From Basidiobolus meristosporus CBS 931.73 (taxonomy: Eukaryota > Fungi > Basidiobolomycota): a stretch of DNA of 61,729 nucleotides. The notes under the pieces are model-generated. The model did no database searches. It was given only the letters and a program-made list of their open reading frames with translations, and was not told where the DNA came from. Positions 13,201 through 50,029 of this stretch are shown here, piece after piece. The stretch is from positions 1 through 61,729 of the forward strand of contig MCFE01000528.1 of assembly GCA_002104905.1 (NCBI GenBank), read 5' to 3'. A program made the position numbers and the translations under genes. How positions within the stretch are numbered: the first letter of the stretch is position 1; the number at the start of each line of letters is the position of its first letter.

Positions 13201-15903
13201 ACATCTCTGGGAATCAACTGAGCTCACTGCCCATCGATGAGATCGAGCGTCTTCGTAATCTCCGAGTTTTCCACCTCAATGGCAACAAACTCCAGACACT
13301 CCCGGCCGAGCTTGGGAAAATACGTCATCTGCAGGTGCTGGACGTAGGTAGTAATAATTTGAAGTATAACATCACTAATTGGCCTTACGATTGGAACTGG
13401 TATGTTGTTCACATGGCATATTCGGTGTAGTGGTTGATCTTAACGCTCGTTTTCCCGTTCATCAGGAACTACAATTTGGAGCTGAAGTATCTCAATCTGT
13501 CGGGCAACAAACGGCTGGAGATCCGAAACAACCTTACGGAATTCGACCGGAACCGGGAGAGAAACCTCACTGATTTCAGTGCGCTTACGGACTTGCGCGT
13601 CTTGGGGCTGATGGATGTTACTTTGATGGTCGGCGTTCCGGAGGAGACCATCACTCGCCGCATCCGAACCTCCACGTCGGAGGCGAATCGTATGGGATAC
13701 GGGATGGCCGATAGCCTGGGCACTTGTGGTCGTTTGTGTGCGTGGGATCTGGCGGTTCCTAGATTCCGAGGCTCCGATAAGGAATGTTTATTTGGGCTAT
13801 TCGACGCAAGAAACATCCAAGATGGCGGGGACAAGTTCTCCCAGTATCTGAATGACTGGTTCGCGTTTCATCTTGACACGGAGTTGAAGAAGCTGCCCGG
13901 CAACGATATGGTGGAGAATGCGTTGCGTCGCACTTTCCTTAGTCTGGAGAAGGAGCTGGGGGCAATCGCAATCAGCGAGGGAAGAAGAGGGGGTGCCACA
14001 GCCGTGGTGGCATATATCAACGATCACACCTTGTACATGGCCAATGTTGGCGATACTCTTGCCGTGATATCCCGTGGGGGCAGAGCCCGACTCGTCTCGA
14101 TGAAACACATCCCTTGGAATCCCGACGAGATCGATCGTGTTCGTGACGCGGCAGGCTGTATATCCTCGGATGGACTGATCGGAGGGAAACTGAGTGTCTC
14201 GAGAGGGTTCGGTTTCTTCCCCTTCCTCCCCGCCATGAATGCCAACCCAACCATTGAAAAGATCGAATTGTCGGAACAAGACGAGTTCATCATCATGGCC
14301 AGCAAGGGGCTTTGGGATTACATGTCGTACCAAACGGCCGTTGATATCGCCCGTACATCTCGAAACGACCTCTTGGTTGCTGCCCAAAAACTTCGGGATT
14401 TCGCCATAGCATACGGGGCCAAAGTCAATATCGTAGTGATGGTGATCGGTGTGCGTGACCTGTTCAAGAAGAAATCGAAGCCCGGAAACCGGTACTACAA
14501 TCATACCACCGGTGGCGGTCTGTTCGGCTTCGCTGACAATGAAGAGGAGACCAACCAAGGGTTTAAGAAGAATAGACGTGGAAAGGAGGAGTTACCTGGG
14601 GACTCGGTGCGTGCAAATATTTGTTGTCTTCCCTGTCCTGAAACACCTGATACTAACATCCTTATTACAAATTTAGACCCTGGCGCGTTTAGGAAGGGAG
14701 GTCCAGCCACCAGTAGGTCAAGTGGCGCTTGTCTTCACTGACATCAAAAACTCCACCTTTTTATGGGAAACCATGCCTGAGGCCATGCAGTCGGCCATTG
14801 GAATGCACAATTTGATCATGAGAAGATTGCTACGGAACATTGGAGGGTATGAGGTGAAGACGGAGGGAGACGCTTTCATGGTGTCGTTCCCTACCGTAAC
14901 ATCAGCCCTGTTCTGGTGTCTCAATGTTCAGATACAACTGCTGCAGGCCGATTGGCCCCAAACCATATTGGAGTGTGAGGATGGAAGAGAGATCTTCGGA
15001 CCAGGGCTCACAAATGAACTACTGTATCGTGGGCTCTCCGTCAGAATGGGGATCCACTGGGGCTCACCGGTATGCGAGGCTGACCCGATCACCCAGCGTA
15101 TGGACTACTTCGGACCCATGGTCAACCGTGCTGCTCGTATTTGCAATTGCGCGGATGGAGGACAGATCTTCGTCAGTTCAGATGTGGTATCTGCCATCAA
15201 GGAGGTGATGGAGAAGGATGACACGTTTGAGGAGGAGCACGGTGAGGAACCTATGGACCCGGATGTAGCTAGTGATGAAATGGCTCTCCAGCGGCTGGGG
15301 ATCCTGATTGTGGAGGTTGGCGAGCAGAAGCTAAAGGGCCTGGAGAATCCGGAAGTGCTGTCCATGATTTTCCCCAAGATCCTAGCCGGGCGTATCGACT
15401 TTTGGAAGAAGTCGCAAAACCCCACTGTGCAGATCTACGAGCCGAATATCTCCCAGACCATCGACCCTGGTTTGGTACGCTCCTTGGGCTACATCTGTCT
15501 TCGTCTGGAGCGGATTGCGGCCGACAGCATGATCCTGTCTACCGGCAGGTCGTCAAGGCTGTATTATCTGAACGGCCTTCTGGCCTCGCACATCCAAGAC
15601 AATGCTGACGACCAGGAGCTCTTGAAGATCATGGAGAGTTTGATTACCCGAATCGAGAATGCTTACTCCTCCATATACCTTGAAAGAATCCGCCCGGTTG
15701 CCGCAATCATCGACGAAGTACTGGGAAGCCATGAGGAGCATCTAGACCAGTTGGATCTGGAGCAACTCAAGCTCATTCTTAGAACGTATCAATCATCCCT
15801 TCGTCCTTCGCCGACACCACTGATGATCAGGGAGTGTGCCACCGATGAAGAGATAACCTCACCCCCGCCAGCTACTCCGCCAGCTACTCAACCTCTCCAA
15901 TAA
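10258..15903 (+). CDS. CYR1: Fungal adenylate cyclase (G-alpha-binding, RA, LRR, PP2C-like and catalytic domains), multi-exon
   Basis: WTAPQSW motif; Ras-association region (LEQIGYTSEDQLKDQGREDNTYLCRFTF); long LRR tract 11.9-13.4 kb ending YNITNWPYDWNW|NYNLELKYLNLSGN; PP2C-like domain; catalytic VFTDIKNST, GGYEVKTEGDAFMV, RMDYFGPMVNRAAR. Confidence 0.95.
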
Positions 15904-31428: not shown

Positions 31429-32106
31429 ATGAGCACTTTCGAAAAGGTAGATATTTCCCGGATGGATGGAACGTTTTGCTGTGCCCGATAGAATAACCAT
31501 TCTCCTTCATCTCAGGTTGTTGTCATCGATGGCAGAGGTCATCTCCTCGGTCGCCTTGCTTCTATCATCTCCAAGCAAATCCTCACCGGTCAAAAGGTTG
31601 TTGTTGTCCGTTGCGAAGAATTGAACGTCACCGGTTCTTTCTTCAGAAACAAGATCAAGTACCACGCTTTCCTCCGTAAGCGTTGTGTTGTCAACCCTTC
31701 CAAGGGACCTTATCACTTCCGTGCTCCTTCCCGTATCCTCTGGCGCACCATCCGTGGTATGATCCCCCACAAGACTGCCCGCGGTACCGCCGCCATGGAG
31801 CGTCTTAAGCTCTTCGAGGGTGTCCCTCCTCCTTATGATACCATGAAGCGTATGGTTGTCCCCGCCGCTCTTCGTGTTCTCCGTCTTAAGCCCGGTCGCA
31901 AGTACACCACCATCAGCCGTTTGAGCAGAGAGGTCGGCTGGAAGTACGAGGACGTTGTCAAGAAGCTCGAGGAGAAGCGCAAGGTCAAGTCCAAGGCTTA
32001 CTACGAGCGCAAGAAGGCCATTCTCAACTTGAAGAACAAGGCTGCTGCCGCCAAGGCCGAGGAATTGAAGAACATCAACGAGTCTTTGGCTGCTTACGGT
32101 TATTAA
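31429..32106 (+). CDS. RPL16: 60S ribosomal protein uL13 (L16/L13A), 2 exons (31429-31446, 31516-32106)
   Basis: MSTFEK|[16 protein letters not shown]...[28 protein letters not shown]; strong codon bias. Confidence 0.97.
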
Positions 32107-32514
32107 GTTATCCAAACTTGTCTTCAATAATAAATAATAAATCAAATCCTTTTCACAACAAACATCCCATGTGTCCTACTCGCTAATATCCATTGCCGCT
32201 AGCAACCATCCATTCGATTTGGTTGCCTGCTCTGTCACCTTTCTGCTCCTACGCTGTTGGTTAAGGCAGCCAAATCCCTCTGGGCTCCTAGCTACCTGGC
32301 TCTGCTGACCATTAATCGCTTTAGGTGGGATATTCTACTGTTGCACTTGTGGAAGGCTACCATGTGGGCATTGCAGCTCCGACTCCCAGGTGTTCTGGTT
32401 TGTCTGGAATCGACGTAAAGATTGCCATTCATTTAAACGGACGTGAGGTTTTTTACTGAACTTTTTTAATTGATGTCAAAATTTAGGCAAAATATTTAAT
32501 CTCCTAATCGGTGG

Positions 32515-33007
32515 TTATTCAAAATTGGCCATGAGTTCGATGACCATGTCCACCTCAGCCTGATCGTGGTTACTCCAGCTTGGATTCACAATGCTCGATA
32601 TGGATTCAGTCGCACCAACCATCTCCTGGAAGAGGGCCCTCTCTTCACACATCTCCCACAAGAGATCGTCCCCTTCACAGTCCAGCACCTCCCACTCGGA
32701 GATGAGTGTGTTCAGCGAGTCAAAGAGCGCATCCTGTGCTACACTGAGTTCTGTAATGGTGAGCATTAGCAAGTGTTCACACAAATCCAGGGGAAAGAGC
32801 AGGCCAACACTTACCATCAATCATATGGAGAAGATCCTCCGCCTTCCTACTGGTTGCCAAAATCAAGATACTCTGGTAGTCAGCCCCACGAATAGCCCCG
32901 TAGAAGCTAGGATCGATCACTGAAGCAGAGCTGATCAGGTTGGATACTGCTCTGATCAAGCGCAGACTAACAGTGGAGCGACGCTTGGTAGTACGAGTGA
33001 AGTGCAT
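32515..33007 (-). CDS. Orphan 142-aa protein, left copy of the palindromic pair (exons 33007-32815, 32750-32515)
   Basis: ATG..GATG|GTAAGT, 64-nt intron with CTAA branch and TACAG acceptor, frame joined to ...DLLWEM...VDMVIELMANFE-TAA. Confidence 0.72.
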
Positions 33008-33598
33008 GGTTGTTGTGGATGCTGCTTCAACAACCGAGTGGAAGGTATTTATGGTACCTCGACTTGCTTGGGTGTCGAAGACAGGTTTGTGATAACATCC
33101 TACATTGGCATTGTTGCTCCTTCGAGACGAGAACGCGACCAAGTCGGTGTGAAATCAGGAGATGAGAAGTCAGCTGGCCAAGCGAGAGGCGGATTCCAGA
33201 TACAATAGTCCGATCCTATTATTCATTGTGGGGTTAGGGTTCATCAAACAAGTGTGTAAGATCTTAAACTTGAATGATCGTCATCAAGCATACACGTTTG
33301 AATATCCAGGGTGGCATGGCAGTAGTGAAGGCAAAAGCTGCCATGGATTTTTCTAGTTCGATATGACTGAAGTACAATTGTCAAGGTATATTACGTAACT
33401 CTGGATCGAACAACTGTACCTGGAATGGCCAGCTGACTTTTCATCTCCTGATTTCACACAGACTTGGTCACGTTCTCGTCTCGAAGTAGCAACAATGCCA
33501 ATGTAGGATGTTATCACAAACCTGTCTTCGACACCCAAGCAAGTCGAGGTACCATAAATACCTTCCACTCGGTTGTTGAAGCAGCATCCACAACAACC

Positions 33599-34091
33599 AT
33601 GCACTTCACTCGTACTACCAAGCGTCGCTCCACTGTTAGTCTGCGCTTGATCAGAGCAGTATCCAACCTGATCAGCTCTGCTTCAGTGATCGATCCTAGC
33701 TTCTACGGGGCTATTCGTGGGGCTGACTACCAGAGTATCTTGATTTTGGCAACCAGTAGGAAGGCGGAGGATCTTCTCCATATGATTGATGGTAAGTGTT
33801 GGCCTGCTCTTTCCCCTGGATTTGTGTGAACACTTGCTAATGCCCACCATTACAGAACTCAGTGTAGCACAGGATGCGCTCTTTGACTCGCTGAACACAC
33901 TCATCTCCGAGTGGGAGGTGCTGGACTGTGAAGGGGACGATCTCTTGAGGGAGATGTGTGAAGAGAGGGCCCTCTTCCAGGAGATGGTTGGTGCGACTGA
34001 ATCCATATCGAGCATTGTGAATCCAAGCTGGAGTAACCACGATCAGGCTGAGGTGGATATGGCCATCGAGCTTATGGCCAATTTTGACTGA
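33599..34091 (+). CDS. Orphan 142-aa protein, right copy of the palindromic pair (exons 33599-33791, 33856-34091)
   Basis: MHFTRTTKRRSTVSLRLIRAVSNLISSASVIDPSFYGAIRGADYQSILILATSRKAEDLLHMID|ELSVAQDALFDSLNTLISEWEVLDCEGDDLLREMCEERALFQEMVGATESISSIVNPSWSNHDQAEVDMAIELMANFD-TGA; canonical 64-nt intron. Confidence 0.72.
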
Positions 34092-34278
34092 AAATTTTGA
34101 GTCCTGTAAGCAGGTCATTGATTGACCCGACTTCAAAAATAAACCAACCATTACTGCTAGATTTGCAGCACAATAGAAATACGTTTACAAGCTGATGCAT
34201 ACTGATGCAAGATTTCTTATTCAATATTATTATCTTGTTGGAATGGGGCTTGGTATAGACCAATCACTGATTTCAATT

Positions 34279-34686
34279 AATTCCAGTAATAGCAATAGTA
34301 GACATTGCAGAGAGTGACAGCTTGGGGCTCATAACATGTTGTAAGAGTCTTGGAGATATTGGAAGTGATTTGGAGAACAAGTAGATTATGTGGTTTGCAC
34401 TTGATGATTTATTGAATGTAAAAGTAGTATTTATACTTTTACCTGGTCTTTGCATTACAAACCTGTAGAATAGGTAAGGGAAGGTCCCAAGAGCATGTGT
34501 GCAAAGTTTGGGGCTGTTTGGACAACTTTGAGAATTTTCATGTTCTGGGTACCTGGTATTTTTGGTGAAAATATTCTAAGTAAATCCCAACAAGGAATTT
34601 GGTCAGTATTCTCTAGGATTTGAGGGTAATGATCTAAGTGACTAAGTTAGGTGAATATTTAGGTGGAATTACAAATTTTTACAACA
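34279..34686 (-). mobile_element. Copia 5' fragment in reverse orientation: complete ~350-nt LTR (34337-34686), PBS and first ~18 gag codons
   Basis: Reverse complement is TGTTGTAA...TTACAACA, ~90% similar by eye to the LTR at 38307-38653, followed by a PBS-like (T)GTTATGAGCCC and MSPKLSLSAMST. Confidence 0.88.
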
Positions 34687-34728
34687 GTTCTCCTAATCAC
34701 TTCCAATATCTCCAAGACTCTTACAACA

Positions 34729-34740
34729 GGTTATGAGCCC
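34729..34740 (+). other. Primer-binding site GGTTATGAGCCC, complementary to the anticodon arm of initiator tRNA-Met
   Basis: Immediately follows the LTR end TTACAACA; reverse complement of GGGCTCATAACC; contains the gag ATG (34733). Confidence 0.85.
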
Positions 34741-37700
34741 CAAGCTGTCACTCTCTGCAATGTCTACTACTGCTACTACTGGAATTTTCTCCTCTGCTCA
34801 AAAATTGGATGGATCTAACTACCAAGTGTGGAAGGTGAAGATGACAATGCTGCTACAAGAAAGAGGCCTTTGGGATATTGTCATGGGAGAAGAATTCCCT
34901 CCTAAAAACATGGGAGAAGAAGCTTTAAAGCACCAGAAGAAAGAACAAAGTGCCTTTAACTGCATTTGCCTTAATGTGAAAGACAAGTTGCTAATTCAAT
35001 GCTCACAAGCAAAAACAGCAAAGAATGCCTGGAAGGCATTAGAAGACACCTACCAGTCATGTTCAGCTGCTAAGAAAATGTATCTAAGACAAAAATTCTT
35101 TGCTACAAAGGCGCTGTCACAAGAAGAAATGAAAAATCTAATTTACAGAATTACCCTACTGGTAGATGAGATGGAATCAGTGGGTGCACCAACTACTGAT
35201 GAGGATGTGATATTTACTAGCCCTAGAGTCCAGAGCTGAAGATTTGGCCTTAAATTACGTATATGGAAGGCTCCCAGATGAAGAATTTAGAAAATCAAGC
35301 GTCAATAGGAAGGAAGAAAAAAATGCTTTAATAAGCAATGATAACCAACCAAGGAGGTACCCAACACCCTACAAAGGCACCAGCAACCTGTTATACAACT
35401 ACTGCTCTCTGTAAGCAAGGCCACAGCAGAAGGATTCAGTTTCAGCTTTGAAAATTCCGGATGCAAGATCACTGATCAAATAGTGCCCATATTGCTTTGG
35501 GTATCAGACATCAAAATCTATACATGTTGACTTATATTCCATCATATTTGGAGGCCAACATAAGTAACTTAGATGAAGAAACACCAATGCTTTGGCACAG
35601 GAGATTTGGACATCAATTTTGATTATTTGCACAAAATGATCAAAGATCAGCTAATTTCTGGAGTAAAAATTGATCCCCCAGCTAATTTGGAGCACTGTGA
35701 AGCCTGCATATATGGCAAACAAGCCAGACAGCCGTTCAAGAGCTCTGGGTTGATCAAAACTCAGGGAAAATTAGATCTAATTCACTCAGATCTGTGTGGA
35801 CCTATGCAAAATTTATCCTTAGGTGGGATGAAGTATTTAATCACTTTCATTGATGATTATACAAGATAAACATGGGTCTACTTCATGGAGAGAAAGGAAG
35901 AAGCTCTGTCTAAGTCCAGGGAGTTTAAAGCCATGGTGCAGAGAGAAACTGGTGAAAAAATCAAGAAAATACGCTGCAACAATAGTAGAGAATATCCCTC
36001 AAAACTCTTCATCTACTTCAGCAGAAATTCATGGGATAAAGCAAGAGACTGCTGTACTATACTCCCCACAGCAAAATGAAGTAGCAGAATGTGCTAACAG
36101 ATCAATAATTGATATGGCAAGATCTATGATCCATGATCAAAAATTATCCTATGACTTTTGAGCAGAATCAATTGCCACTGCTGTATATCTTAAAAATTGG
36201 AGTTATAGCAGGATACTTTGTGGTCCTACTCCATTTGAAGCATGGTATGGGTACAGACCAAGTGCAGAACATCTAAGAATATTTAGGTATACAGCATATG
36301 CCAAGAAACTGACCGGAAATCAGGCAAAATTTGAGCCAAAAATTGTAAAATGCATATTTTTGGGTTACTGCAATGTGAGTAAAGCATACAGACTCTGCAA
36401 TATCAAAGCAAAGAAGCTAATCAAGTCCAGTGATGTGTTGTTTGATGCAAATTCAAAATTTTCACAAATAATGACATCAGATGATGACAAAAAACTGATC
36501 TTAAGTCCATCAATTGTCAGCACTGAATCAGAGCAAAACAATGAAATTTTTTCACTCCATAGGGCTCTGCAACCGTTGTTCAGCCAGAGTTTGAGCCCAG
36601 GAATATCACAGAAGTGATCATTCCAGTATCAAATGCCTGGAGATCCAATTGGACAAGAAATAGCTCAAATTACTTTATCAATGAGGGTACAAACTTAGCT
36701 TATGCCTATTCAGTCCATATTGATGAGCCCCAGACTGTAAAAGAGGCCCTAAGTAGCCCTCAGACAAAGTTTTGGAGATCTGCAATGACTGAGGAATATC
36801 AGGCCCTGATGGAAAATCAAACTTGGGACTTGGTCAAATTACCAATCAACCAAAAATCAATTGGATGCAGATAGGTCTTCAAGACAACAAACAAGACTAA
36901 TTGTACAATTGAAAGATACAAAGCAAGACTTGTGGCCAAAGGATACTTTCAAACAAAAGGACTTGACTATACTGAGACCTTTGCACTGGTAGCCAAGTTT
37001 AATTCCATCAGACTAATATTGGCTATTGCAGCCAAATATGAGTTTTTATTCATCAAATGGATGTAAAAGCTGCATCTTTAAATGGAGAGCTTGATGAAAA
37101 TGTGTATATGGACCAGTCAGATGGATTTGTTGACCAAAGATAACCCCCATTTGGTCTGTGAGCTTAAAAAGTCACTATATGGTCTCAGACAATCACCACA
37201 AGCCTGGAATTGCAAGATAGATTCTTATTTGGAATCTTTGAGTTTCAAAAGGAGCAATGCTGCCTATAGTATAAGCTGTAAGCCAGATAGAGCAAATTCA
37301 GTTCTATTAGCGCTATATGTGGATGATCTTATTATAGCCGCCAATAACCTAGAAACATTGGAAGAGACTAAATTCAGCCTATCTAAGGAGTTCAAGATGT
37401 CGGATCTAGGAGAACTTAGTTACTACTTTGGGAATAAGTTCTCCATAGACAGAAGTACCCAGACAATTCCCCTAAGCCAATCCAAGTATATTCAAGATAT
37501 ACTAAAGAAGTCCAAATGGAAGACTGTAAACCGGCAGCTACCCCAATGGAGACAAACCTTAAAATGGTCAAAACTCAACCAAATCAAAAGAGCTTGGTGC
37601 CATCTGAAAGCCCTAACTTTCCTTATCAATCTATAGTTGGCAGTCTGATGTATATTATGCTTGGACCACGTCCAGATATCTAATATTCAGTGGGAGTTGT

Positions 37701-38306
37701 CAGCCAACATAATCAGAATTATGAATCAGATCATATTGCAGCAGTTAAGCGGATTTTTAGATACCTAAAAGAAACAGCTGATATCTGATTAAGATACACT
37801 TATAAGGATGCAGAGCAGGATCTTGTGGGATACTCTGATGCTGATTGGGGACAAAATTTGAAAGACAGAAGATCTACCACAGAATACACCTTTCTTTACT
37901 GTGAAGGAGCAATTTCATGGAATTCAAGAAAGCAACCAACCATAGCACTTTCTACCACAGAGGCAGAGTACATGGCAGCCTGTGGAGCTACAAAAGAAGC
38001 AATGTGGTTAAGAAAGCTTTTTACAGAGTTAGGCCTATGTCAAAAAATGCCTATTCCTTTATTTCAAGATAATCAAGGATGTATACAACTAGGTAGAAAT
38101 CCAACTTTTCATGCTAGAACTAAGCACATAGACATTAGACATCATTTCATACGTGAAGCTATAGAGAATAACTTAGTTTGCTTAGTTTACTGTCCTACAG
38201 ATGAAATGATTGCGGACATATTTACCAAACCATTAGCTAGAGACAAGTTTGAATATCTTAGGTCAAAATTAGGACTAGTCAGTATGAGCATTTAGCTGAG
38301 TGGGAG

Positions 38307-38653
38307 TGTTGTAAAGCTTGTAATTCCACCTAAATATTCACCTAACTTAGTCACTTAGATCATTACCCTCAAATCCTAGAGAATACCAACCAAATTCCTT
38401 GTTGGAATTTACTTACAATATTTTCACCAAAATACCAGGTACCCAGAACATGAAAGTTCTCAAAGGTGTCCAAGCAGCCCCAAACTTTGCACACATGTTT
38501 TTGGACCTTTTTTAACCTATTCTACATGTTTGTAATGCCAAGACTATGTAAATGTATAAATACTACTTTTTCATTCAATTAATCATTAAGTGAGAACCAC
38601 ATAGTCTGCTTGTTCTTCCAAGCACTTGCAATATCTCCAAGACTCTTACAACA
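38307..38653 (+). repeat. Copia A 3' LTR (347 nt)
   Basis: TGTTGTAA...TTACAACA, preceded by purine tract TGAGTGGGAG; internal TATAAATA. Confidence 0.92.
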
Positions 38654-41430
38654 AATTCTGCTACAACACACAGGCCTTTGGGATATTGTCATGGGAGAAG
38701 AATAACATCATAAAACATGGGAGAGGGAGTCTTAATGCACCGGAGGAAAGAACAAAGTGCTTTTAACTGCATTTGCCTTTGTTATATCCAAGAGAGAATT
38801 GTAGTAGAACTCTTGAATGATTTAACTGATCCCAATTGACAGCTAATACAGAATCTTAAAATTGTTAAGGGTGACAGAAATATTAGCAGAGAAGTTCAGG
38901 TCTAATCTTGGTCTTGTATGTAGTTGAGTTGGGCTATAAAGGCAACAGAGTTGGTTTACTATACAGGCTAGTCTTTGTGTTCTTGGGAATGCTAGATATG
39001 CTAGGCTTAATTGGAAACTAGAATAGAATTGCTGAATCTTAATTTTATTGAGACACACACTGAATCAAAAGGCTCAGTAATCTCTATTTATATTTTTCTG
39101 ATCAAGTTGAATTAGTAAGTGCCAAGAGACTGGACTGATTGAAATCTGTTGGGGTGTTGATAGGTGCATAAGATAAATGAAAAGTGCATCATTAATCAGC
39201 TGATGTCTTGGCAACCACTAAGTGGTAGGATGGATCTCAGATGACTAATCCTTTGGAAAGGCTTAGCAGATCAGTTGAGGATATAATGACCACTTGAAAC
39301 TTGATCAGGTGACAGCTAAAAACAGTTTCTGAGAAGTGATAAAATAAACTATAACAGGGATTAGTTATGCTTGGGTTAGGGAAAAGTAGCTAGGGTACTA
39401 GATTTTCTAACAGAGTCAAATTGGCTAAGTTTTAAATAGTGATGCACAACAGCCTCAAAGTCAACTACAAATTGCCAATTTGATCCTCAAGATCAAAAGC
39501 AGCAAAGAATGCCTGGATGGCATTAGAAGACACCTACCAGTCATGTTCAGCTGCTAAGAAAATGTACCCTAGACAAGAATTTGTTACTACAAAGAAGCGG
39601 CCAGGAGAATAAATGAAAAATCTGACTGATAGAATTACTCCACTGGTGGAAGAGATTGAACCTGTTAATGTACCAACAACTGATGAGTATGTGATAGTTA
39701 GCATCCTGAATAGCCTGACAGACAAGCTACAGGGCCTTGTATAAGCCCTAGAATCCAGAACTGAATATTTGACCTTAAGTTACATAAACAGAAGGCTTCC
39801 AGAATAATAATTAAGAAAATCAAGTGCCAATAGGAAGGAAGAAGATTTTGCTTTAATAAGCAATGTTAGCCAGCAAAGGAAATGCCCTAAACCCTTCAAG
39901 GGTAACAGAAACCTGTTTTGCAACTACTACAAAAGCTAAGGACACATATCAGACCAGTGCTTCAAAAGGGAGAAAATTAGCAAAAGAAACTTGAGCATGG
40001 ATATACTGCAACAACCAAAGATAGACTATTCATAACTACACTGTATATGACCATAAACAAGGACTTTGAGATGCAGTATATTGACTCTGGAACATCTTAA
40101 CACTATACAAACCAAAACAAGCTTTTTACCTAATATTAAGAAATCCAATTTGGAAGGTTTTCATAGGTGAAAATAGAACACTTGATGCAGTTTGAGAAGG
40201 AACCATCTAGGTATGCTATAGAATCAGTGAAGGAAGTCAGACACCTACCCTGACAAAAGTACTTCATATACCAGAAATAGCCAAGAACCTACTATCTGTA
40301 AGCAAGGACACTGCCAAAGGACTCAGTTTCAGCTTTGACAATCTTGGACACTGGATCACTGATCAGAATGGTGCCTATATTGCTTTGGGTATCAGAGATT
40401 GGAATCTGAATAAGTTGACTTATAGTCCATCATATATGAAAGCTAATATAGGTTACTTAAGTTTAGAAACATCATGCTTTGGCACAGGAGGTTTGGACAC
40501 ATCAATTTTGCTAAATTTGAGCAAAATGATCATAGATCAGCTAGTTTCCAGAGTAAATACTGATCCCCCAGCTGATTGAAGCATTGTGAAGCCTGCACAT
40601 ATGAGAAGAAAGCCCAACAGCTGTTCAACAGCTCTAATTTAATCAAAACTAGGAAAAAATTAGAGCTGATTCACTCAGACCTGAGTGGACTTATAAAAAA
40701 TATATATCATTATGCTGGATGAACCATTAAATCACTTTTGTGGATATTTGTACAGGATACATATAGGCCTACTTCATGAAAAGAAAGGAAGAAGCTCAGT
40801 CTAAGTTAAGGGAGTTTAAAGCCATGGTGGAGAGAGAAACTGGTGAAAAAATCAAGAAAATATACTACAATGTTGGTGGAGAATATATCTCAAAGCTTTT
40901 CATCTAGTTCTTGAAAACTCTTGGGATAAAGCTAGAGACAACTGTACCATACCCCACACAGCAAAATGGAGTAGCAGAACATGCAAACAGATCAATAATT
41001 GATATGAGAGGAACCATGATCCATGATCAGAAATTATCCCATGTTTTTTAGTAGAATCAGTTGCAACAGCTGTGTGCCTTAAAAGTAGGAGCTATAACAG
41101 AACACTTTGTGATTGTACTCCATCTGAAGCCTGGTATTGATACAGACCAAGCACAGAACATCTAAGAATATTTGAGTTTACAGCATAAGCCAAGAAACTG
41201 CCCAGAAATTGGTCAAAATTTGAGCCAAAAAGTGTGAAATGCATATTTTAGGGCTACTGCAATGAGAGTAAGCCATACAGACTCTATAATACCAAAGCAA
41301 AGAAGCTAATCAAGTCCAAAGATGTGCTGTTTGATGAAAAATAAAAATACTCAACAAAAATGACATTGGATGATGCCAAAAATCAGATCCAAGTTCACCA
41401 ATTGTCAGGATTGAGTCAGAGCAAAACAAT
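38654..41430 (+). mobile_element. Copia remnant B of the same family: gag, protease, integrase; heavily mutated and interrupted by a solo LTR
   Basis: DNA similarity to the gag of A (gggatattgtcatgggagaag, aagaatgcctggatggcattagaagacacc), degenerate DSG protease motif near 40.08 kb, integrase-like DNA at 40.6-41.3 kb. Confidence 0.85.
38780..39451. mobile_element. Probable solo LTR of a different family inserted into the gag of copia B
   Basis: TGTT...AACA ends; flanks GCCTT/GCCTC form a 5-bp TSD with one mismatch; copia gag resumes seamlessly afterwards. Confidence 0.65.
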
Positions 41431-41445
41431 GCAATGCAGCCTATA

Positions 41446-41610
41446 TCCTAAGTTTGAATTTCCATAAGGGCCTGATATTCCTCAGTCATTGCAGATCTCC
41501 AAAACTTTGCCTGAGGGCTATTTGGTGCCTCTTTTACATTCTGGGGCTCATCAATATGGCCTGAATAGGCATAGGCTTAGTTTGTTCCCTCATTGATATA
41601 GTTGTTTGAG
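41446..41610 (-). mobile_element. Inverted copia fragment (start of the RT region)
   Basis: Reverse complement matches 42580-42740 and 36670-36830 (gagccccagaatgtaaaagaggc...ttttggagatctgcaatgactgaggaatatcaggccc). Confidence 0.85.
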
Positions 41611-44211
41611 TAAAAATTGATCCCCAAGCTAGTTTGGAGCACTGTGAGGCCTGCATGAATGGGAAACAAGCCAGACAACCATTTAAGAGCTAACTCACTC
41701 AGATCTGTGTGGACCTCTGCAGAATATATACTTAGGCTGGATAAAGTATTTAATCACTTCTACTGATGATTATACAAGAGACACATGGGTCTACTACATA
41801 GAGAGAAAGGAAGAAGCTCTATCTAAGTTCAGGTAGTTTAAAGCCATGGCGGAGATAGAAACTGGTGAAGAAATCAAGAAAATATGCTCTTACAATTGTA
41901 GAGAATATACCTCAAAATCCTTCATCAACTTCTGCAAAATTCATGGGATAAAGCAAGAGACTACTGTACCATACTCCCCACAGTAAAATGGAGTAGGAGA
42001 ATGTGCAAACAGATCAATAATGGATATGGCAAGATCTATGATCCATGCTCAAAGATTATCCCATGATTTTTGGGCAGAATCAGTTGCCACAGCTGCAAAC
42101 TCAAAATTGGAGTTATAACCAAATACTTTGCAATTTACTCCATTTGAAGCATGGTATGGATATAGACCAAGTGCAGAACAGCTCAGAATATTTGGGTATA
42201 CAGCATATGCCAAGAATTTGCATGAAAATAAGTCAAAATTTGAGCCAAAAAGTGTGAAATGCAAATTTTTGGGCTACTACAATGAGAGTGAAGCATACAT
42301 ACTCTACAATACCAAAGCAAAGATGCTGACTAAGTCCATGAATGGGATGTTTGATAAAAAAACCAAAATTTTCATACAAATGACAACAGGTGATGACAAA
42401 AATATGATCTCAAGTCTACCAATAGCCAGGATTGAAGCAGAGCAAAATAATAAAGACCTTTCACTCCAAAGGACCCTACAACCATGGTTCAGCCTAAATC
42501 ATTGCCCAAAAACATTCTAGATGTGATCATTCCAGTATCAAATGCCTGGATATATAACTGGACAAGAAATAACCCAAATTACTATATCAATGAGGGTTCA
42601 AACTTGGCCTATGCCTATGCAGACCATATCAATGAGCCCCAGAATGTGAAAGAGGCACTGAATAGCCCGCAGGCAAAGTTTTGGAGATCTGCAATTATTG
42701 AGGAATATCAGGCCCTTATGGAAAATCAAACTTGGGACTTAGTCAAATTACCAAACAACCCAAAATCAATTGGATGCAGATGGGTCTTCAAGACAACATA
42801 CAAGGCTAATTGTACAATCAAAAGTTGCAAAGCAATACTTATGGCCAAAGAATACTCTCAAACAAAAGGACTTGACTATATTGAGACCTTTGTGCTGGTA
42901 GGCAAGTTTAATTCCATCAGATTGGTACTGGCTGTTGCCACCAAATATACATTTTTTGTACATCAAGTGGATTTAACTGCTTCTTTGAATGGTGAACTTG
43001 ATGAGGACATGTATCAGCACCAGCTTGATGGGTTTGTTGTCCAAGATAACCCCCATTGGGTCTGCAGCTTAAAAAGTCTTTCTATGGACTCAAACAATCA
43101 CTATGAGCCTAGAATTGCAAAATAGGTTCTTTTTTGGAATCATTGAGTTTCAAGGAGAGTAATACTGACTATAGTTCATACTATAAGCCAGGTAGAGCAA
43201 ATCCAGTTCTATTAGCTCTATATGTGGATGATCCTATTTCAGCTGCCAATAACCTAGAAACATTAGAGGAGACTAAATCCAGCCTGTCTAAGGAGTTCAA
43301 GATGTCAGATCTAGGAGAACCTAGTTACTACTTAGGGATTAAGTTCTCCATAGACAGAAGTACCCATACTATCACCCTAAGCCAATCCAAGAGAATTCAG
43401 GATGAACTAAAGAAGTATCAAATGGAAGACTGTACACTGGCTGCTACCCCAATGAAGACAAACCTTAACTAGGTCAAAGCTCAACCAAATCGAGAGAGCT
43501 TGGTGCCATCTGAAAGCCCTGACTTTCCTTATAAGTCTAAAGTTGGCAGTCTAATGTATATTATGCATGGAACAGGTCCTAATATATCACATTCAGTGGT
43601 AGTTGTCAGCCAGCATAATCAGCACTATGGGTCTGATCATATTGCATCAGTTAAGCAGATTTTTAGATATCTGAAAGGAACCACTGATGTCTACGTAAGA
43701 TACACTTATAAGGATTCTGAACAGAATCTTGTGGGATACTCTGATGCTGATTGGGGACAAAATTTGGAGGATAGAAGATCCATTGCAGGATACACCTTTC
43801 TTTACTGCAAGGGATTAATTTCATGGAATTCAAGAAAGCAACAAACTGTAGCACTTTGTACCACAGAGGCAGAGTATATGGCAGCCTGTGAGGATACAAA
43901 AGAAGCAATGTGGTTACAGAAGCTTCTTACAGAGTTAGGCATATGTCAAAATATGCCTATTACTTTAAATCACAATAACCAAGGATGTATACATTAGGTA
44001 GATATCCAACTTTTCATGCTAGAAGTAAGCACATAGATATTAGATATCATTTCATATGTGAAGCTATAGAGTACAACATAGCTAATGTATCCTACGGTCC
44101 TACAGATGAAATGATTGCAGACATATTTACCAAACTATTGGCTAGAGACAAGCGCAAATATCTTAGGTCCAGATTAGGACCAGTCATTATGAGTGTTTAG
44201 ATGAGTGGGGG

Positions 44212-44774
44212 TGTTGTAGAAACTTGTAATACCACCTATATACTCATCAACCTTAGTCACTTGGATCATTACATTCAAATCCTTGGGAATACTGATCAAA
44301 TTCCTTGTTGGGATTTATTCAGAATATTTTTACCAAAATACCAGGCACCAAGAACATGAAAATTCTCAATGTTGTCCAAACAGCCCCAAACTTTGCACAC
44401 ATGCTCTTGAGACTATTCTGAGCCTATTCTATGTGCTTGCTATGCCAAGACTACTCAAAAGTATAAATACTATATTTGCATTCAATAAATAGACTTGTTA
44501 CATCACTCCAGCTGATCATAGTGCCCAATAGTACCATAGCATGCTAGATGGTGCCTGATTGTGCCACAGAGTGCCACATGGTGCCATACAGTGCCAATAT
44601 GGGATCAAAATTGACATGCATATGACCCTAAAATATCAAATTAATAACAAAATATAGAGCACTTTCTGGCACTATGATCAATGACACAATGGAACAAGTC
44701 TTATCATTAAGTGAAAGCCACAAAATCTGCTTGTTCTCCCAATCACTTCCAATATCTCCTAGACTTTTACAGCA
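44212..44774 (+). repeat. Copia LTR shared by elements C (as 3' LTR) and D (as 5' LTR); carries a 211-nt insertion
   Basis: Preceded by a PPT and followed by the PBS GGTTATGTGCCC and gag. Confidence 0.85.
44491..44701. mobile_element. MITE-like non-autonomous DNA transposon (211 nt)
   Basis: Imperfect ~34-nt TIRs (AGACTTGTT..TGATCATAGTGCC / GGCACTATGATCA..AACAAGTCT); absent from the other two LTR copies; possible 3-bp TSD (AAT/TAT). Confidence 0.78.
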
Positions 44775-47700
44775 GGTTATGTGCCCCCAGCTGTCTCTCT
44801 CTGCAATGTTTACTACTGCTATTACTGGAACCTTTCCCTCTGCTGATCAGTTGGGTTGATCTAAATACCAAGTATGGAATGCAAAGTTGAAGATGCTGCT
44901 ACACAAAAGAGGCTTTTGAGATATTGCCATAAGAGAAGAATGCCCTCCTAAGAATGTGAGTGAGGAAGCCTTAAGGTACCAGAACAAAGAACAAAGTGCC
45001 TTCAACTGCATTTGCCTTAATGTTGAGGACAAACTTCTAATTCAATGCTCAAGAGCAAAAATGGCAGAGAATACCTGGGAAGCATTAGATGACACCTACT
45101 AGTCATGCTCAGCTGCCAAGGAAATATATCTTAGGCAAAAACTCTTTACTACAAAGGTGCAGCCAGAAGAAGAAATGAAAAATCTAATTAGTAGATTTAT
45201 CCTGCTTATGGATGAGATGGAATCAGTAGGCACATCAACTACTGATGAGGATGTGATAGTGACCATCCTGAATAGTGTGACTGACAGGTTTCAGGGCCTT
45301 GTGTCAGCTGTAGAGTCTGGAACTGAAGATTTGACTTTGAATATGTAAATGTAATGCTCCAGGATGAAGAATTAAGGAAATCAAGCACCAAAAAGAGGGA
45401 AGAAGAAAATGCTTTATTAAGCAATGCTAACCAGCAAAGGAGATACCCAAGACCTTTTAAAGGCAATAGCAACTTGTTTTGCAACTACTGCAAAAGGAAA
45501 GAACATATATCAGACCAGTGCTTCAAGTAGAATGACAGTCAGCAGCAAAGGTCAGAATATGGAAATGCTTCTACAACTGAAGATAGACTATATAAATCTG
45601 CACCAAATATGACCATAAACAAGAATCCTCAGTTGTGCTATAATGACTCTGGAGCATCTTAACACTTTACACACCAAAAAGGACTTTTTACTTAATATCA
45701 AGAAATTTCAGTCAAGAGGTTATTATGGATGATAATAAATACGTGATGCTGTGGGAAAAGAAACTATCAAAGTAAACCTTAGAAGCAGTGAAAGAAGCCA
45801 TGCACAGACCTTTCAAGAAGTACTCTATGTACCAGAAATTGCCAAGAACCTACTATCTGTAAGCAAGGCCATCACACAAGGACTTAGTTTCAGCTTTGAC
45901 AAATCTGGATTCAGGATCACTAATCAAATAGTGCAGATATTGCTTTGGGTATCAAAGATCAGAGTCTATATAAGTTGACTTATATTCACCATATCTGGAA
46001 GTCAATATTAGTGACTTGAATGAAGAAGTATCAATGCTTTGGCACAGGAGATTTGGACACATCAATTTTCATTATTTGCACAAAATGATCAATCATCAGC
46101 TGATTCCCAGAGTAAAAGTTAATTTCTCAGCTAGTTTGGAGCACTGTAAAGTCTACATATAAGGGAAACAAGCCAGACAACTGTTCAAGAGCTCTGATTT
46201 ATCAGAACCAAGAAAAAATTAAATCCAATTCACCCAGATCTGTGCAGACCTATGCATGATTTATCCTTAGGTGGTATGAGTATTTAATCACTTTTGTTGA
46301 TAATTATACAAGATACATATGGGTCTACTTCATGGAGAGAAAGGAAGCAGCTCAGTTTAAGTTCAGAGAGCTTAAAACCATGGTGGATAGTGCAACAGGT
46401 GAAAAAATCAAGAAATTAAACTGTGAGAATGGTTGAGAAAATACCTCAAAACTCTTCATCCACTTCTTCAAAATTAATGGGATGAAGCAGGAGGCCACTG
46501 CACCATACTCCCAGCAGCAAAATAGAGTAACAGAATGTGAAAACAGACCAATAATAGATATGGCAAGATCTAAGATCCATGTTCAAATATTATCCTATGA
46601 TTGTTGGGCAGAATCAGTTGCCACTGCTGTATACCTTAAAAATAGGAGTTATGACTGTGTACTCTGTGGTTCTATTCTGCTTCAAGCATGACATCAATAC
46701 AGACCAAGTGCAGAGCATCTAAGAATATTTAGGTGTACAACCTATGCCAAGAATCTGCCTAAAAATCAGTCAAAATTTGAGCCAACAAGTGGTGAATGAA
46801 GATTATAGGGCTATTGCAATGAGAGTAAAGCATATAGACTCTACAGCACTAAAGCACAGAGGCTGATAGAGTCCAGGGATGTGTTGTTTGATGAAAGTGC
46901 AAGATTTTCACACAAAATGATGTCAGATTATGACAAAAACCTGATCTCAAGTCCACCAGTTGTCAGGATTGAAACAGAGCAACACAATTAAAATTTTTTC
47001 ACTCCAGCAGACTCTGCAACTGTAGTTCAGCCTGAAGCAGTGCCTAGGAATATCCTAAAAGTGGTCATTACTGTACCAAATGTGCAAAGAGCCAGCCAGG
47101 CAAGAAATAGCCTAAGCTACTGCATCAATGAGTGTACCAGCTTAGCCTATGCCTATTCAGTCCATATTAATGAGCCCAGACTGTAAAAGAGGCTGTAAAA
47201 GCCCTCAGACAGAGTTTTGGAGATGTTCAATGACCCAGGAATATCAGGCCCAAATGGAAAATCAAACCTGGGACTTGATCAAATTAGCAAAACCCCAAAT
47301 CAATTGGATGCAGGTGGGTCTTCAAGACAAAGTACAAGGCTGATGGTACAATTGAAAGATACAAAGCAAGACTTGTGGCTAAAGGATACTCATGGACAAA
47401 AGCACTTGAACATACTGAGACCTTTCCACTGGTAGCCAAATTTAATTCCATCAGACTAATTTAGGCTATTGCAGCCAAATATAAGTATTTTATTCATCAA
47501 ATGAATATGAATACCGCATTTTTGAAAGAAGAGCTTGACTAGGATGTGTATATGAGCCAGTCTGATGGGTTTTTTTGACCAAGATAGCCCCTATTTGGTC
47601 TGCAAGCTATAAAAGTCTTTATATGGACCAAGACAATCACCAGGAACCCGGAATTGGAAAATAGATTCTTATTTGGAATCTTTAAGCTTCAGATGGAGTA

Positions 47701-49570
47701 ATGCTGACTATAGTATATACTGTAAGCCAGATAGGACAAATCCAGTACTATTAGCTCCATATGTGAATGATCTTATTTTAACTGCCAATAACCTCAAGAC
47801 ATTGGAAGAGACTAAATCCAGCCTATCTAAAGAGCTCTGTGGTTATGGAAAGTATTCCACTGCTACATATCTCAAAACTAATATTGCACTCATTTCTTTA
47901 TTTTGCTTTTTGCTATTGTAACATACAAGCAAAAGATCAGGAATTTCCAACTATAAAGGACAAATGCTCCAGACCCTGACAAGCAATCCACCCAAGAATA
48001 TTAAGTCATGCAGAACACTCAGTAGTCAACACCTACTTCAAATTACAGCTCATTTAAAGCAGTACTTAAGGGGTTATGATCAAAAAAGTTTAATTGTCAT
48101 ATGCACTAGGCCTCTATTACTATGATTACTATGGTGACTTTGATTGCATGTAACTTTTGAGCTAGACAATACAATCACCTGAAAGTCTCACGGATGCTTT
48201 GCCAATGTCCAATCTGTGCTTCTGCAAAATTTTAGCTTTGTCTCTTGTATCTTGCTTGCGCAAATGCCCAAAAATTTTGATCCTTCAGAATTTTCATATA
48301 TATGACTTCTCCAGCTGAAATATAAAGGAGAGCCACTCTTTCCAGAATCTCCACACCACAATTATAAGTTTAAAGATTATAAGACTTCCCCTGCATCACT
48401 TGACTGTTGCGTATTCTGACTTTGATTGGTACTACATCAGTAAAGTGACTGCAAAGCTCACAAGAAGCCAATCTAAGTTCTACAAGAAAACTACCACTTT
48501 TCTGCTGGAAAAGTCCCCTCTAAGAAACCCCTTTAATCTAAAGACACTACTGCAGACACCCCTTTAGTCTAAAGACCCCTTTAGAGAACCCTCCAAGAAG
48601 CCCCTTTACTCTAAAGAAGCCCCTTTGGGCACCCCTTTAGTGTAAAGTCCACTTGGGAGACCACTACAAGAAGCCCTTTACTCTAAATACACCCTTTTAG
48701 ACACCCCATTAGGTCTAAAGTCCCCTTTAGAGACTTCTACACCACACCCATTTAGGTTAAAGGGGAGTTTAGCATTTCCATATTGAGAAATGTTTTCTTG
48801 GAAAGGATAGTGACTTCCAAATAAGGAAAAGCTACTCTAAGAATAAATAAGCCCAATAGTTGACAGAAGGTCAGAACACCACTGTAGAAGTGAGAATCAT
48901 AGCCCATAGTATACTTTGAGCCTAAGGTAGAGGGTATTAGTGAAAGTTATGTCTTCTATTGGTATATCAAACTCCCAAAAAATAATATCAGTATTGGCAT
49001 ACTGGGAGTTGTTGTATATTGTTGATTAGCCTCTACATTGCAGTACAAGCCCCAAACTATTCATAATACAAACAACAGCTCAAGATGTCCAATCTTGGAG
49101 AGCTCAGTTACTGCTTGGGAATAAAGTTTTCCATAGACATATGTACCCAGACCATCATCCTAAGCCAATCCTGGTATACTTGAGATATACTTGAGAAGTA
49201 CCTGATGGATAACTGTAAACAGGCAACTGCTAAAATGCAGACAAACTTGACTTGTCATAACACAACAAATTAAGAGAGCTAGTGCCACCTGAAAGCCTAA
49301 CTTTCCTTATCATTCTATGCTCAGTAGTCAACCTATGCATGCTTGAACACATCTAGATATCTTATTCAGTGGAGTTGTCAGCCAGCATAAACAAACTATG
49401 GATCTAATCAAATTGTAGCAGTTAAGCAGACTTTAGATACCTAAAAGAGCTGCTGATATATGCTTAAGATATACTTATAAGATTCAGAGCAGAATCTTTA
49501 GGATACTGTGATGCAGATTGGGACAAATTTGAAGACAGAAGATCCACACAGATACACCTTCTTCACTGTA
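44775..49570 (+). mobile_element. Copia remnant D: gag, protease, integrase, RT and partial RNase H, interrupted by a solo LTR at 47838-49077
   Basis: PBS, gag, DSGAS-like protease DNA at ~45650, integrase and RT similarity; RT DNA resumes at 49082; GYCDADW near 49500; the right end is approximate. Confidence 0.85.
47838..49077. mobile_element. Solo LTR (1240 nt), family X copy 1
   Basis: TGTGGT...ACAACA ends; exact 4-bp TSD GCTC (47834-47837, 49078-49081); collinear with 53861-54957. Confidence 0.88.
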
Positions 49571-50029
49571 CTTATAAAAATTATTGTGTGATCCATCAAA
49601 GGACATCACAGATTCTAAGTCTGTGACTAAGAGTATTGATTCATCAGGACACCATTCAAAGACTGTCAAATATATTTGTACTCAGATTTCATAAAAATTG
49701 GTCAAAACTTTGATAAGAACAAACAAAATGGCTTTTAATTGTTCTCTGCCAATTTTCTCACTTACTAATCTTGGGCACTGTATCACCTCCTACATTTGTG
49801 TACATTGATTGGCTATTGCCTCTTTTTCACATTCCTTAATACCTGACTCAATTGTTTCTCTTATTTTTCATGCATACAAGTTGATTTATTTCCACTGAAA
49901 CTTCAGTTGTACCTCAATTGCCAATTGTACTGATCTATACAAGTCCCTATACCCTACACTAACATTAAGCTCAATTCCACACTCAACAAGTAACTCCATT
50001 AAGATCCACCTCTCAATCAGTATTTTTGC

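Follow-up and report, generated by a model that had tools for sequence, protein, structure and literature searches.

How two nearly identical genes come to stand head to head in a small palindrome, and what keeps the halves of that palindrome alike, are questions raised by one scaffold of the fungus Basidiobolus meristosporus CBS 931.73. The scaffold (MCFE01000528.1, complete at 61,729 nt, and called the window below) carries two copies, A and B, of a spliced gene for a 142-aa protein, arranged around a short spacer and pointing away from it. The pair could be a recent duplication, a misassembly, or part of a mobile or selfish element. Comparison with other loci of the same genome points instead, with some confidence, to an old module whose arms are homogenised by gene conversion, encoding a protein that appears confined to Basidiobolus and held under purifying selection, and with two copies that may be regulated differently.

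In the window the inverted repeat has arms of 662 nt each (32519-33180 and 33426-34087), 98.5% identical with 10 mismatches, on either side of a 245-nt spacer (33181-33425). Each arm carries an intact two-exon gene with a reading frame of 429 nt after splicing. The two start codons are 591 nt apart, and on each side 173 nt of this stretch belong to the arm. The original prediction, made from the letters alone, had described the inverted pair, its exon and intron coordinates, the outward direction of the genes and their stop codons (TAA in one, TGA in the other), and all of these were reproduced by a repeat search and splicing. It had also put the duplicated part of the centre at about 200 nt; this is present on each side, but at 173 nt. 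The likeness of the arms breaks off at the stop codons, to within a few bases, as had been noted. The window features are as follows.

32519-33180, minus strand: left arm, with about 173 nt of promoter/5' region and copy A to its last codons (inverted-repeat search)
33426-34087, plus strand: right arm, with copy B (inverted-repeat search)
33181-33425, no strand: unique, asymmetric spacer, whose copy-A half (about 33201-33256) is conserved elsewhere in the same polarity
33230-33241: telomere-like GGGGTTAGGGTT, conserved, in the copy-A half of the spacer (spacer alignment)
32815-33007, minus strand: copy A exon 1, 193 nt, ATG at 33007-33005 (translation identical to ORX88466.1)
32751-32814, minus strand: copy A intron, 64 nt, phase 1, GTAAGT...CTAAT...ACAG, at a site common to the family copies
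32515-32750, minus strand: copy A exon 2, 236 nt, stop codon TAA at 32517-32515 (spliced translation)
33599-33791, plus strand: copy B exon 1, 193 nt (spliced translation)
33792-33855, plus strand: copy B intron, 64 nt, phase 1, GTAAGT...CTAAT...ACAG (spliced translation)
33856-34091, plus strand: copy B exon 2, 236 nt, stop codon TGA at 34089-34091 (spliced translation)

Besides the stop codon, the two coding sequences differ by three synonymous and three non-synonymous changes (R/W, A/V, and D/E), so that the proteins differ at three residues. The spliced translation of copy A is identical, letter for letter, to ORX88466.1, annotated by JGI/NCBI as a hypothetical protein. Copy B is annotated as ORX88467.1, a partial protein of 183 aa with an upstream extension. 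This N-terminal extension was rejected: indels of 5 and 3 nt separate the loci in the upstream region, and because they are not all multiples of three they show the extension to be non-coding.

Four loci of a single assembly, that of B. meristosporus CBS 931.73, were compared: the window and three others, called here L001, L002, and L003. The three emerged from a protein search as further clusters of 142-aa paralogues, all from B. meristosporus and 62-66% identical over exon 2, and in two of them the genes are again adjacent pairs.

L001: genes at 6616-7109 (minus strand) and 8001-8494 (plus strand); arms of 699 nt, 97% identical; spacer of 491 nt
L002: genes at 6608-7095 (minus strand) and 8001-8488 (plus strand); arms of 606 nt, 99% identical, with an 85-nt continuation; spacer of about 500 nt
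L003 (scaffold MCFE01000260): a single copy at 165-652 (plus strand), on a contig that starts 164 nt before its ATG

The start of the L003 contig coincides exactly with the arm start seen at the other loci, and its partner copy was probably lost at the contig break. The module, of 1.6-1.9 kb, is thus present in at least three copies and probably in four. That the gene is kept as a palindromic unit, as originally proposed, agrees with this: the module recurs at three or four loci, with much greater likeness between the arms of a locus than between one locus and another.

Within a locus the arms are 97-99% identical, intron and synonymous sites included, with dS (synonymous substitutions per synonymous site) at 0.02-0.05, and near-identity also spans 125-200 nt upstream. 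Between loci, DNA identity is 72-79%, with the intron and upstream sequences unalignable or much diverged. In a tree of the coding sequences, copies cluster by locus. The sequences just outside the genes sort by type. One kind of 3' tail, type B, follows a gene end of ...GAC TGA A and has an AATAAA-like motif (right side of the window and of L001, left side of L002); the other, type A, follows TAA or TAG and contains AATTTTGATAAAC (left side of L001, right side of L002, L003, and, weakly, left side of the window). The two window tails are these.

32435-32514, minus strand: copy A 3' flank, a type-A tail after TAA (z = 3.4 to L001 type A)
34092-34171, plus strand: copy B 3' flank, with the GAC TGA A context of the L001 and L002 type B and an AAATAAA (z = 5.0 to L001 type B)

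Similarity of tails and spacers was judged by shuffle-calibrated alignment scores (z) and by BLAST extension lengths; global-alignment identity of 80-nt flanks is uninformative, as AT-rich controls reach 0.6-0.7. Among L001, L002, and L003, type-A tails match with z = 12.7, 14.7, and 5.7, and the type-B tails of L001 and L002 match with z = 7.9. When BLAST pairs two A sides or two B sides, the alignment runs some 45-65 nt deeper into the flank and about 140 nt deeper into the spacer than when it pairs an A side with a B side; for the window and L001, a 39-nt extension beyond the copy A stop codon is seen in the A-A pairing only. The spacers of L001 and L002 align with z = 81 in the same polarity and 0 when one is flipped, and those of the window and L002 with 7.3 and 1.8. 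Coding arms, then, group by locus, the tails and spacer of L001 and L002 by type, and the paralogous modules act as internal outgroups from which the age of the palindrome can be read in one genome.

The mismatches that do remain between arms are concentrated at their ends. In the window, eight of ten are no more than 70 nt from an arm edge (P = 1e-4), as are 17 of 21 in L001 (P = 3.5e-9), and the longest identical blocks measure 356 nt (window), 533 nt (L001), and 424 nt (L002). Because tail types and spacer polarity match across loci and mismatches cluster at the arm edges, homogenisation rather than youth appears to account for the likeness of the arms. The comparisons show for L001 and L002, and support moderately for the window, that the palindrome predates the split between loci. 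The unchanged spacer polarity also fits conversion without crossover, although with three loci this is weak evidence.

The simplest history, and the one proposed here, would start from an ancestral module of A gene, spacer, and B gene that was copied to several places in the genome. Its two-exon genes are transcribed outward from the centre, each arm having its own conserved promoter/5' region of about 170-200 nt. As shown for L001 and L002, and with moderate support for the window, the asymmetric spacer and two distinct 3' tails (A, with TAA/TAG; B, with GAC-TGA-A) were already present before the loci diverged. Recurrent intrachromosomal gene conversion, mostly crossover-free, would then keep the arms alike, with tracts fading at the ends of homology, which are the stop codon on the outer side and, on the inner side, a point about 125-200 nt before the ATG.

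Between loci, the coding frame itself has clearly been constrained. All seven B. meristosporus copies are intact, and all have their intron after nucleotide 193, in phase 1. Intron lengths in the four loci are 64, 65, 59, and 59 nt; the sequences have diverged, with GT..AG ends and a branch-site-like motif kept. By the Nei-Gojobori method, dS between loci is 0.24-0.92 and dN (non-synonymous substitutions per non-synonymous site) 0.06-0.18, for a dN/dS of 0.17-0.32, and Fisher tests on the proportions of synonymous and non-synonymous differences give a synonymous excess with P from 1e-4 to 1e-9. The same intron site is found in the six copies extracted from the sister species B. ranarum, which among themselves have dS of 0.27-0.92 and dN/dS of 0.06-0.25. 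Selection on the frame had been proposed from the differences between the window arms. These alone are too few to carry that claim; the between-locus comparisons do show that the coding frame is under purifying selection.

Upstream of the start codons, three short blocks are conserved at all four B. meristosporus loci, each found at just two sites in the window.

33552-33562, plus strand: TATA-like box CCATAAATACC, 47 nt before the copy-B ATG; copy-A mirror at 33044-33054 (minus strand)
33512-33529, plus strand: conserved upstream box TATCACAAACCTGTCTTC; mirror at 33077-33094 (minus strand)
33444-33457, plus strand: conserved upstream box TCTCCTGATTTCAC, near the inner arm edge; mirror at 33149-33162 (minus strand)

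In the B. ranarum copies the TATA-like box takes the form (A/G)ATAAATAC, and a CATCAACAAC element likewise precedes the ATG. Since each arm has its own conserved promoter blocks, each gene has its own core promoter, and the two do not depend on one strictly shared promoter. Tails and spacer that differ in a conserved way suggest different regulation of the two copies of one protein. This qualifies an earlier suggestion that the pair serves to double the dosage: there are indeed two copies of one protein, but each keeps its own kind of 3' flank, the spacer is asymmetric, and both features match across loci.

Transcript data come from one run (X3), identified as RNA by the spliced contig that it has on the neighbouring Tcf25 gene. 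Low-depth RNA contigs from it lie over 32576-33315, that is, over the left arm and spacer. All comparative criteria indicate that the gene is real and spliced. The contig on the copy-A half of the spacer (33121-33315) has a depth of 17, about twice that on the arms (8-9), and the copy-B half (33316-33425) is almost without RNA contig coverage. This spacer transcript extends well upstream of the TATA-like box, and may be a long copy-A 5' leader or a separate transcript.

Relatives of the protein were found in Basidiobolus only, in keeping with the lineage-specific gene originally supposed. A profile hidden Markov model search of 1.84 billion representative proteins returned two clusters only, the B. 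meristosporus family and a 131-aa B. ranarum protein, and a word-based protein search gave 13 proteins, all from B. meristosporus or B. ranarum (nine B. ranarum clusters). Metagenome contigs scanned with the family alignment yielded no relative. In a run from another Basidiobolus sample (X4), one contig matches the promoter/exon-1 part of the gene (33496-33679) with at least 90% identity, and the family is probably present in a third Basidiobolus lineage; diverged contigs for the ribosomal protein uL13 are also found in that run. Judged by these comparisons, this is an old Basidiobolus family, under strong constraint and with several gene copies in each of the two species examined.

It had been asked whether orthologues would also be palindromic pairs. 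This holds for the paralogues at L001 and L002 in B. meristosporus but not for B. ranarum, where neighbouring copies on the contigs fetched are direct tandem repeats 1.1-1.6 kb apart and never inverted. The B. ranarum contigs (GCA_040143965.1, L004-L007) are 1.1-3.6 kb long, with 80-91% DNA identity between neighbours, and the true arrays probably extend beyond what is assembled. One B. ranarum protein model (P0016, 84 aa) is truncated, and P0013 and P0016 both have an upstream extension.

Members of the family are 131-142 aa long. Residues 1-31 have a net charge of +6 and no D or E in either species, and the remainder has a net charge of -17 to -24. The N-terminal segment is unusually conserved between species, with an invariant R..VSL.LI..VS following RR(S/Q/F)(S/T/P), and a helix is predicted at residues 15-28 in a low-confidence model. 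Further strongly conserved blocks are LLH.IDEL..AQDALFDSLN.LIS.WE and W..DQAE.DM.IEL. There is no stretch resembling a signal peptide or transmembrane segment, and no 18-residue window with a mean hydropathy above 1.12.

The protein had not been recognised at the outset, and database searches left it so. Pfam comparisons, made with the exons, with the complete proteins, and with each of the 15 members of the family, gave sub-threshold noise only (AAA_5, HRDC, YKL104W-A), a profile search of the PDB gave no matches at E<=10, and the best Foldseek match in the PDB had E = 1.0, with the better of the low-confidence models as query. An ESM Atlas feature search with proteins of both species gave scores no higher than 0.72, which is chance level. 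Rfam and tRNA scans of the window found nothing. The protein is predicted, with low confidence, to be all-helical and intracellular. Its basic N-terminus would be compatible with a mitochondrial presequence, with nuclear targeting or nucleic-acid binding, or with a regulatory segment bearing kinase sites. As a best guess, it may be a small regulatory or adaptor protein that this basic N-terminus directs to an organelle or the nucleus and that is needed from several gene copies.

Other accounts of the palindrome need to be weighed against this evidence. That a single gene was misassembled as an inverted duplicate could be argued from the right arm, which is nearly without separately placed Logan unitigs (depth 0-9 over 33680-34047), and from the L003 contig, which breaks at an arm edge. 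The depth hole is, however, explained by the placing of identical stretches on one arm only. Unitigs from two DNA runs, which may be the assembly's own source data, cross the spacer and both inner arm ends (33115-33459), linking the spacer to both arms, and cross both outer junctions (31989-32578 and 34028-34282) into different unique flanks. The arms also have private differences and different stop codons, and the same structure occurs on three scaffolds, so that an artefact is scarcely conceivable: the mirror-image gene pair is real. Another account would explain the likeness of the arms by their youth, each locus having undergone its own recent inverted duplication, and the low within-locus dS would fit this. 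This would take three or four events with the same head-to-head layout, stop-codon boundary, tail types, and spacer polarity, and mismatches are bunched at the arm edges rather than evenly spread. Separate recent duplications are therefore very improbable.

The module might alternatively be, or ride on, a mobile element, either of foldback type or as a copia passenger. A compact 2-kb unit at unrelated places, in loci without common flanking genes, would be explained in this way, and at three loci fragments of a copia long terminal repeat (LTR) are found 125-285 nt beyond the end of one gene, with one locus 6.7 kb from a telomere. The position of the LTR varies, however: in the window and in L001 it is on the side of the B gene, in L003 on that of the A gene, and in L002 it is 5.5 kb away. 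The window module adjoins a ribosomal protein gene and is not between LTRs. Homology fades gradually past the arms, with no terminal motif or target-site duplication seen, and no similarity to transposases or reverse transcriptases was found for the module. With copies that, at the four loci compared, are few, old, and under purifying selection, and with a conserved intron, a mobile origin is unlikely. A family of selfish or conflict genes (spore killers, meiotic drivers, or incompatibility factors), amplified in palindromes or arrays, could also be genus-specific, multi-copy, palindromic or tandem, and at some loci near transposable elements or a telomere, and would be compatible with low expression in the one RNA run. 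Poison-antidote drivers are marked by fast-diverging paralogues, by transmembrane (wtf) or nuclease/kinase (Spok) domains, or by both, whereas the family here has no rapid diversification and no transmembrane stretch, and resembles no Pfam family or solved structure. An arms race is disfavoured because dN/dS is 0.06-0.32 across old paralogues with dS up to 0.9, and long invariant motifs are common to both species. A conflict gene is decidedly unlikely on these grounds, and the roles in drive, incompatibility, boundary formation, or stress floated in the original prediction found no support.

Several points count against an old, conversion-maintained module with a constrained spliced gene. The A/B typing of the window tails is weak (the z scores of 3.4 and 5.0 above) and rests mainly on stop-codon context and the spacer, and the left flank of the window aligns by BLAST for about 40 nt into the B-type flank of L002, which conflicts with its typing. 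Gene conversion between the arms is something we infer from the pattern of differences. The 64-nt intron joint was not among the joints listed for the RNA contigs over the left arm and spacer, and AlphaFold models of the protein are poor, with a pLDDT (predicted local distance difference test) of 51 from seven sequences and 46 from 15.

The surroundings of the module differ from locus to locus, and no flanking genes are common to the four. In the window the neighbours are Tcf25 and ribosomal uL13, in L001 ribosomal L37e and L30 and a homeobox gene, in L002 a GH16 gene and a gene resembling nonribosomal peptide synthetases (NRPS), and in L003 14-3-3 and Sec7 genes. The L001 scaffold ends in (TTAGGG)n at 15206-15432, which makes the L001 pair subtelomeric, with copia fragments between pair and telomere. 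The NRPS-like gene of L002 (8828-14039; AMP-binding and PP-binding domains; 1575 aa) stops 340 nt short of one copy, with the GH16 gene opposite. The window's uL13 gene (31472-32147) is very highly expressed in the RNA run, at a depth of up to about 200,000; in the DNA runs it has a second contig variant, some 9% diverged, which indicates a paralogue elsewhere in the genome.

On the other side of the window palindrome, G+C content drops at about 34 kb from roughly 0.47-0.55 to 0.37-0.39, at the start of a Ty1/copia cluster (34279-50000) with gag at 34733-35239, reverse transcriptase (RVT_2) at 37082-37636 and 42484-43125, and 1.1-kb segments repeated at 35402, 40289, and 45850. A 350-nt repeat at 34337-34686 is the Ty1/copia LTR; its summed contig depth in the DNA runs is in the millions, and it is also found in the RNA run. 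Two 100-nt pieces of the LTR form an inverted repeat (34279-34378 and 34687-34786). The LTR starts at about 34279-34337, 190-250 nt past the copy-B stop codon, with uL13 on the other side of the pair. Copia LTR fragments occur near all four loci, at differing sides and distances. That the palindrome sits at a transposon border, which had been part of its first interpretation, is incidental, since the LTR side varies and one locus lies between ordinary genes. Two specific forms of element were rejected: a Ty1/copia passenger gene, the gene being outside the LTRs and without shared element proteins, and a foldback or terminal-inverted-repeat transposon, the aligned flanks having no terminal motif or direct duplication and the copies, at the four loci compared, being few and diverged. 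Homology between loci continues for 40-110 nt past the arms.

What the palindrome might be for can be put forward only tentatively. It is possible, though we would not call it likely, that it is a selected device by which one dose-sensitive new helical factor, specific to Basidiobolus and essential in the genus, is supplied by an old two-gene module from two differently regulated copies, set apart by their conserved 3' tails and by an asymmetric spacer that is partly transcribed, with conversion keeping the coding parts error-free, and that it is one case of a genome-wide, coding-region-bounded conversion in Basidiobolus. The comparisons in any event define a genus-restricted, multi-copy family under clear purifying selection, a reasonable target for knock-out and localisation. 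No publication was found for the locus tags or accessions, and a preprint on 19 Basidiobolus genomes does not mention palindromes, duplication, or conversion. Basidiobolus is an early-diverging fungus, and no earlier description of such structures in one was found in the literature.

The nearest parallels come from elsewhere. Gene palindromes on primate sex chromosomes have arms more than 99% identical through arm-to-arm gene conversion (PMC3723533, PMC8981503, PMC3403216). The modules described here resemble them in having inverted arms with intact genes around a unique spacer, arm identity above that expected from the age of the structure, and spacer inversion that is rare or absent. They are hundred- to thousandfold smaller, with arms of 0.66 kb against 9 kb to 1.45 Mb, and have one gene per arm, ending at the stop codon; they are not known to lie on a sex chromosome, and they occur as three or four diverged paralogous modules in one genome, that of one strain's assembly. 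Foldback elements share the long inverted arms, short spacer, and presence at several genomic sites, but here the arms encode a spliced gene under selection, homology outruns the arms, and the copies are old and few.

Another parallel is the Drosophila hsp70 pair at 87A, a small divergent inverted gene pair under concerted evolution. It too consists of short head-to-head copies with their own promoters, in which coding and proximal promoter sequences are homogenised and distal flanks differ. The Basidiobolus pair differs from it in encoding an orphan protein with an intron, in recurring as a unit at several loci, and in being replaced by direct tandem arrays in the sister species. The process is thus already known from other genomes, and the gene is an uncharacterised, genus-specific one; what is particular here is the miniature scale, the several diverged paralogous palindromes, the switch to tandem arrays in a sister species, and the orphan protein.

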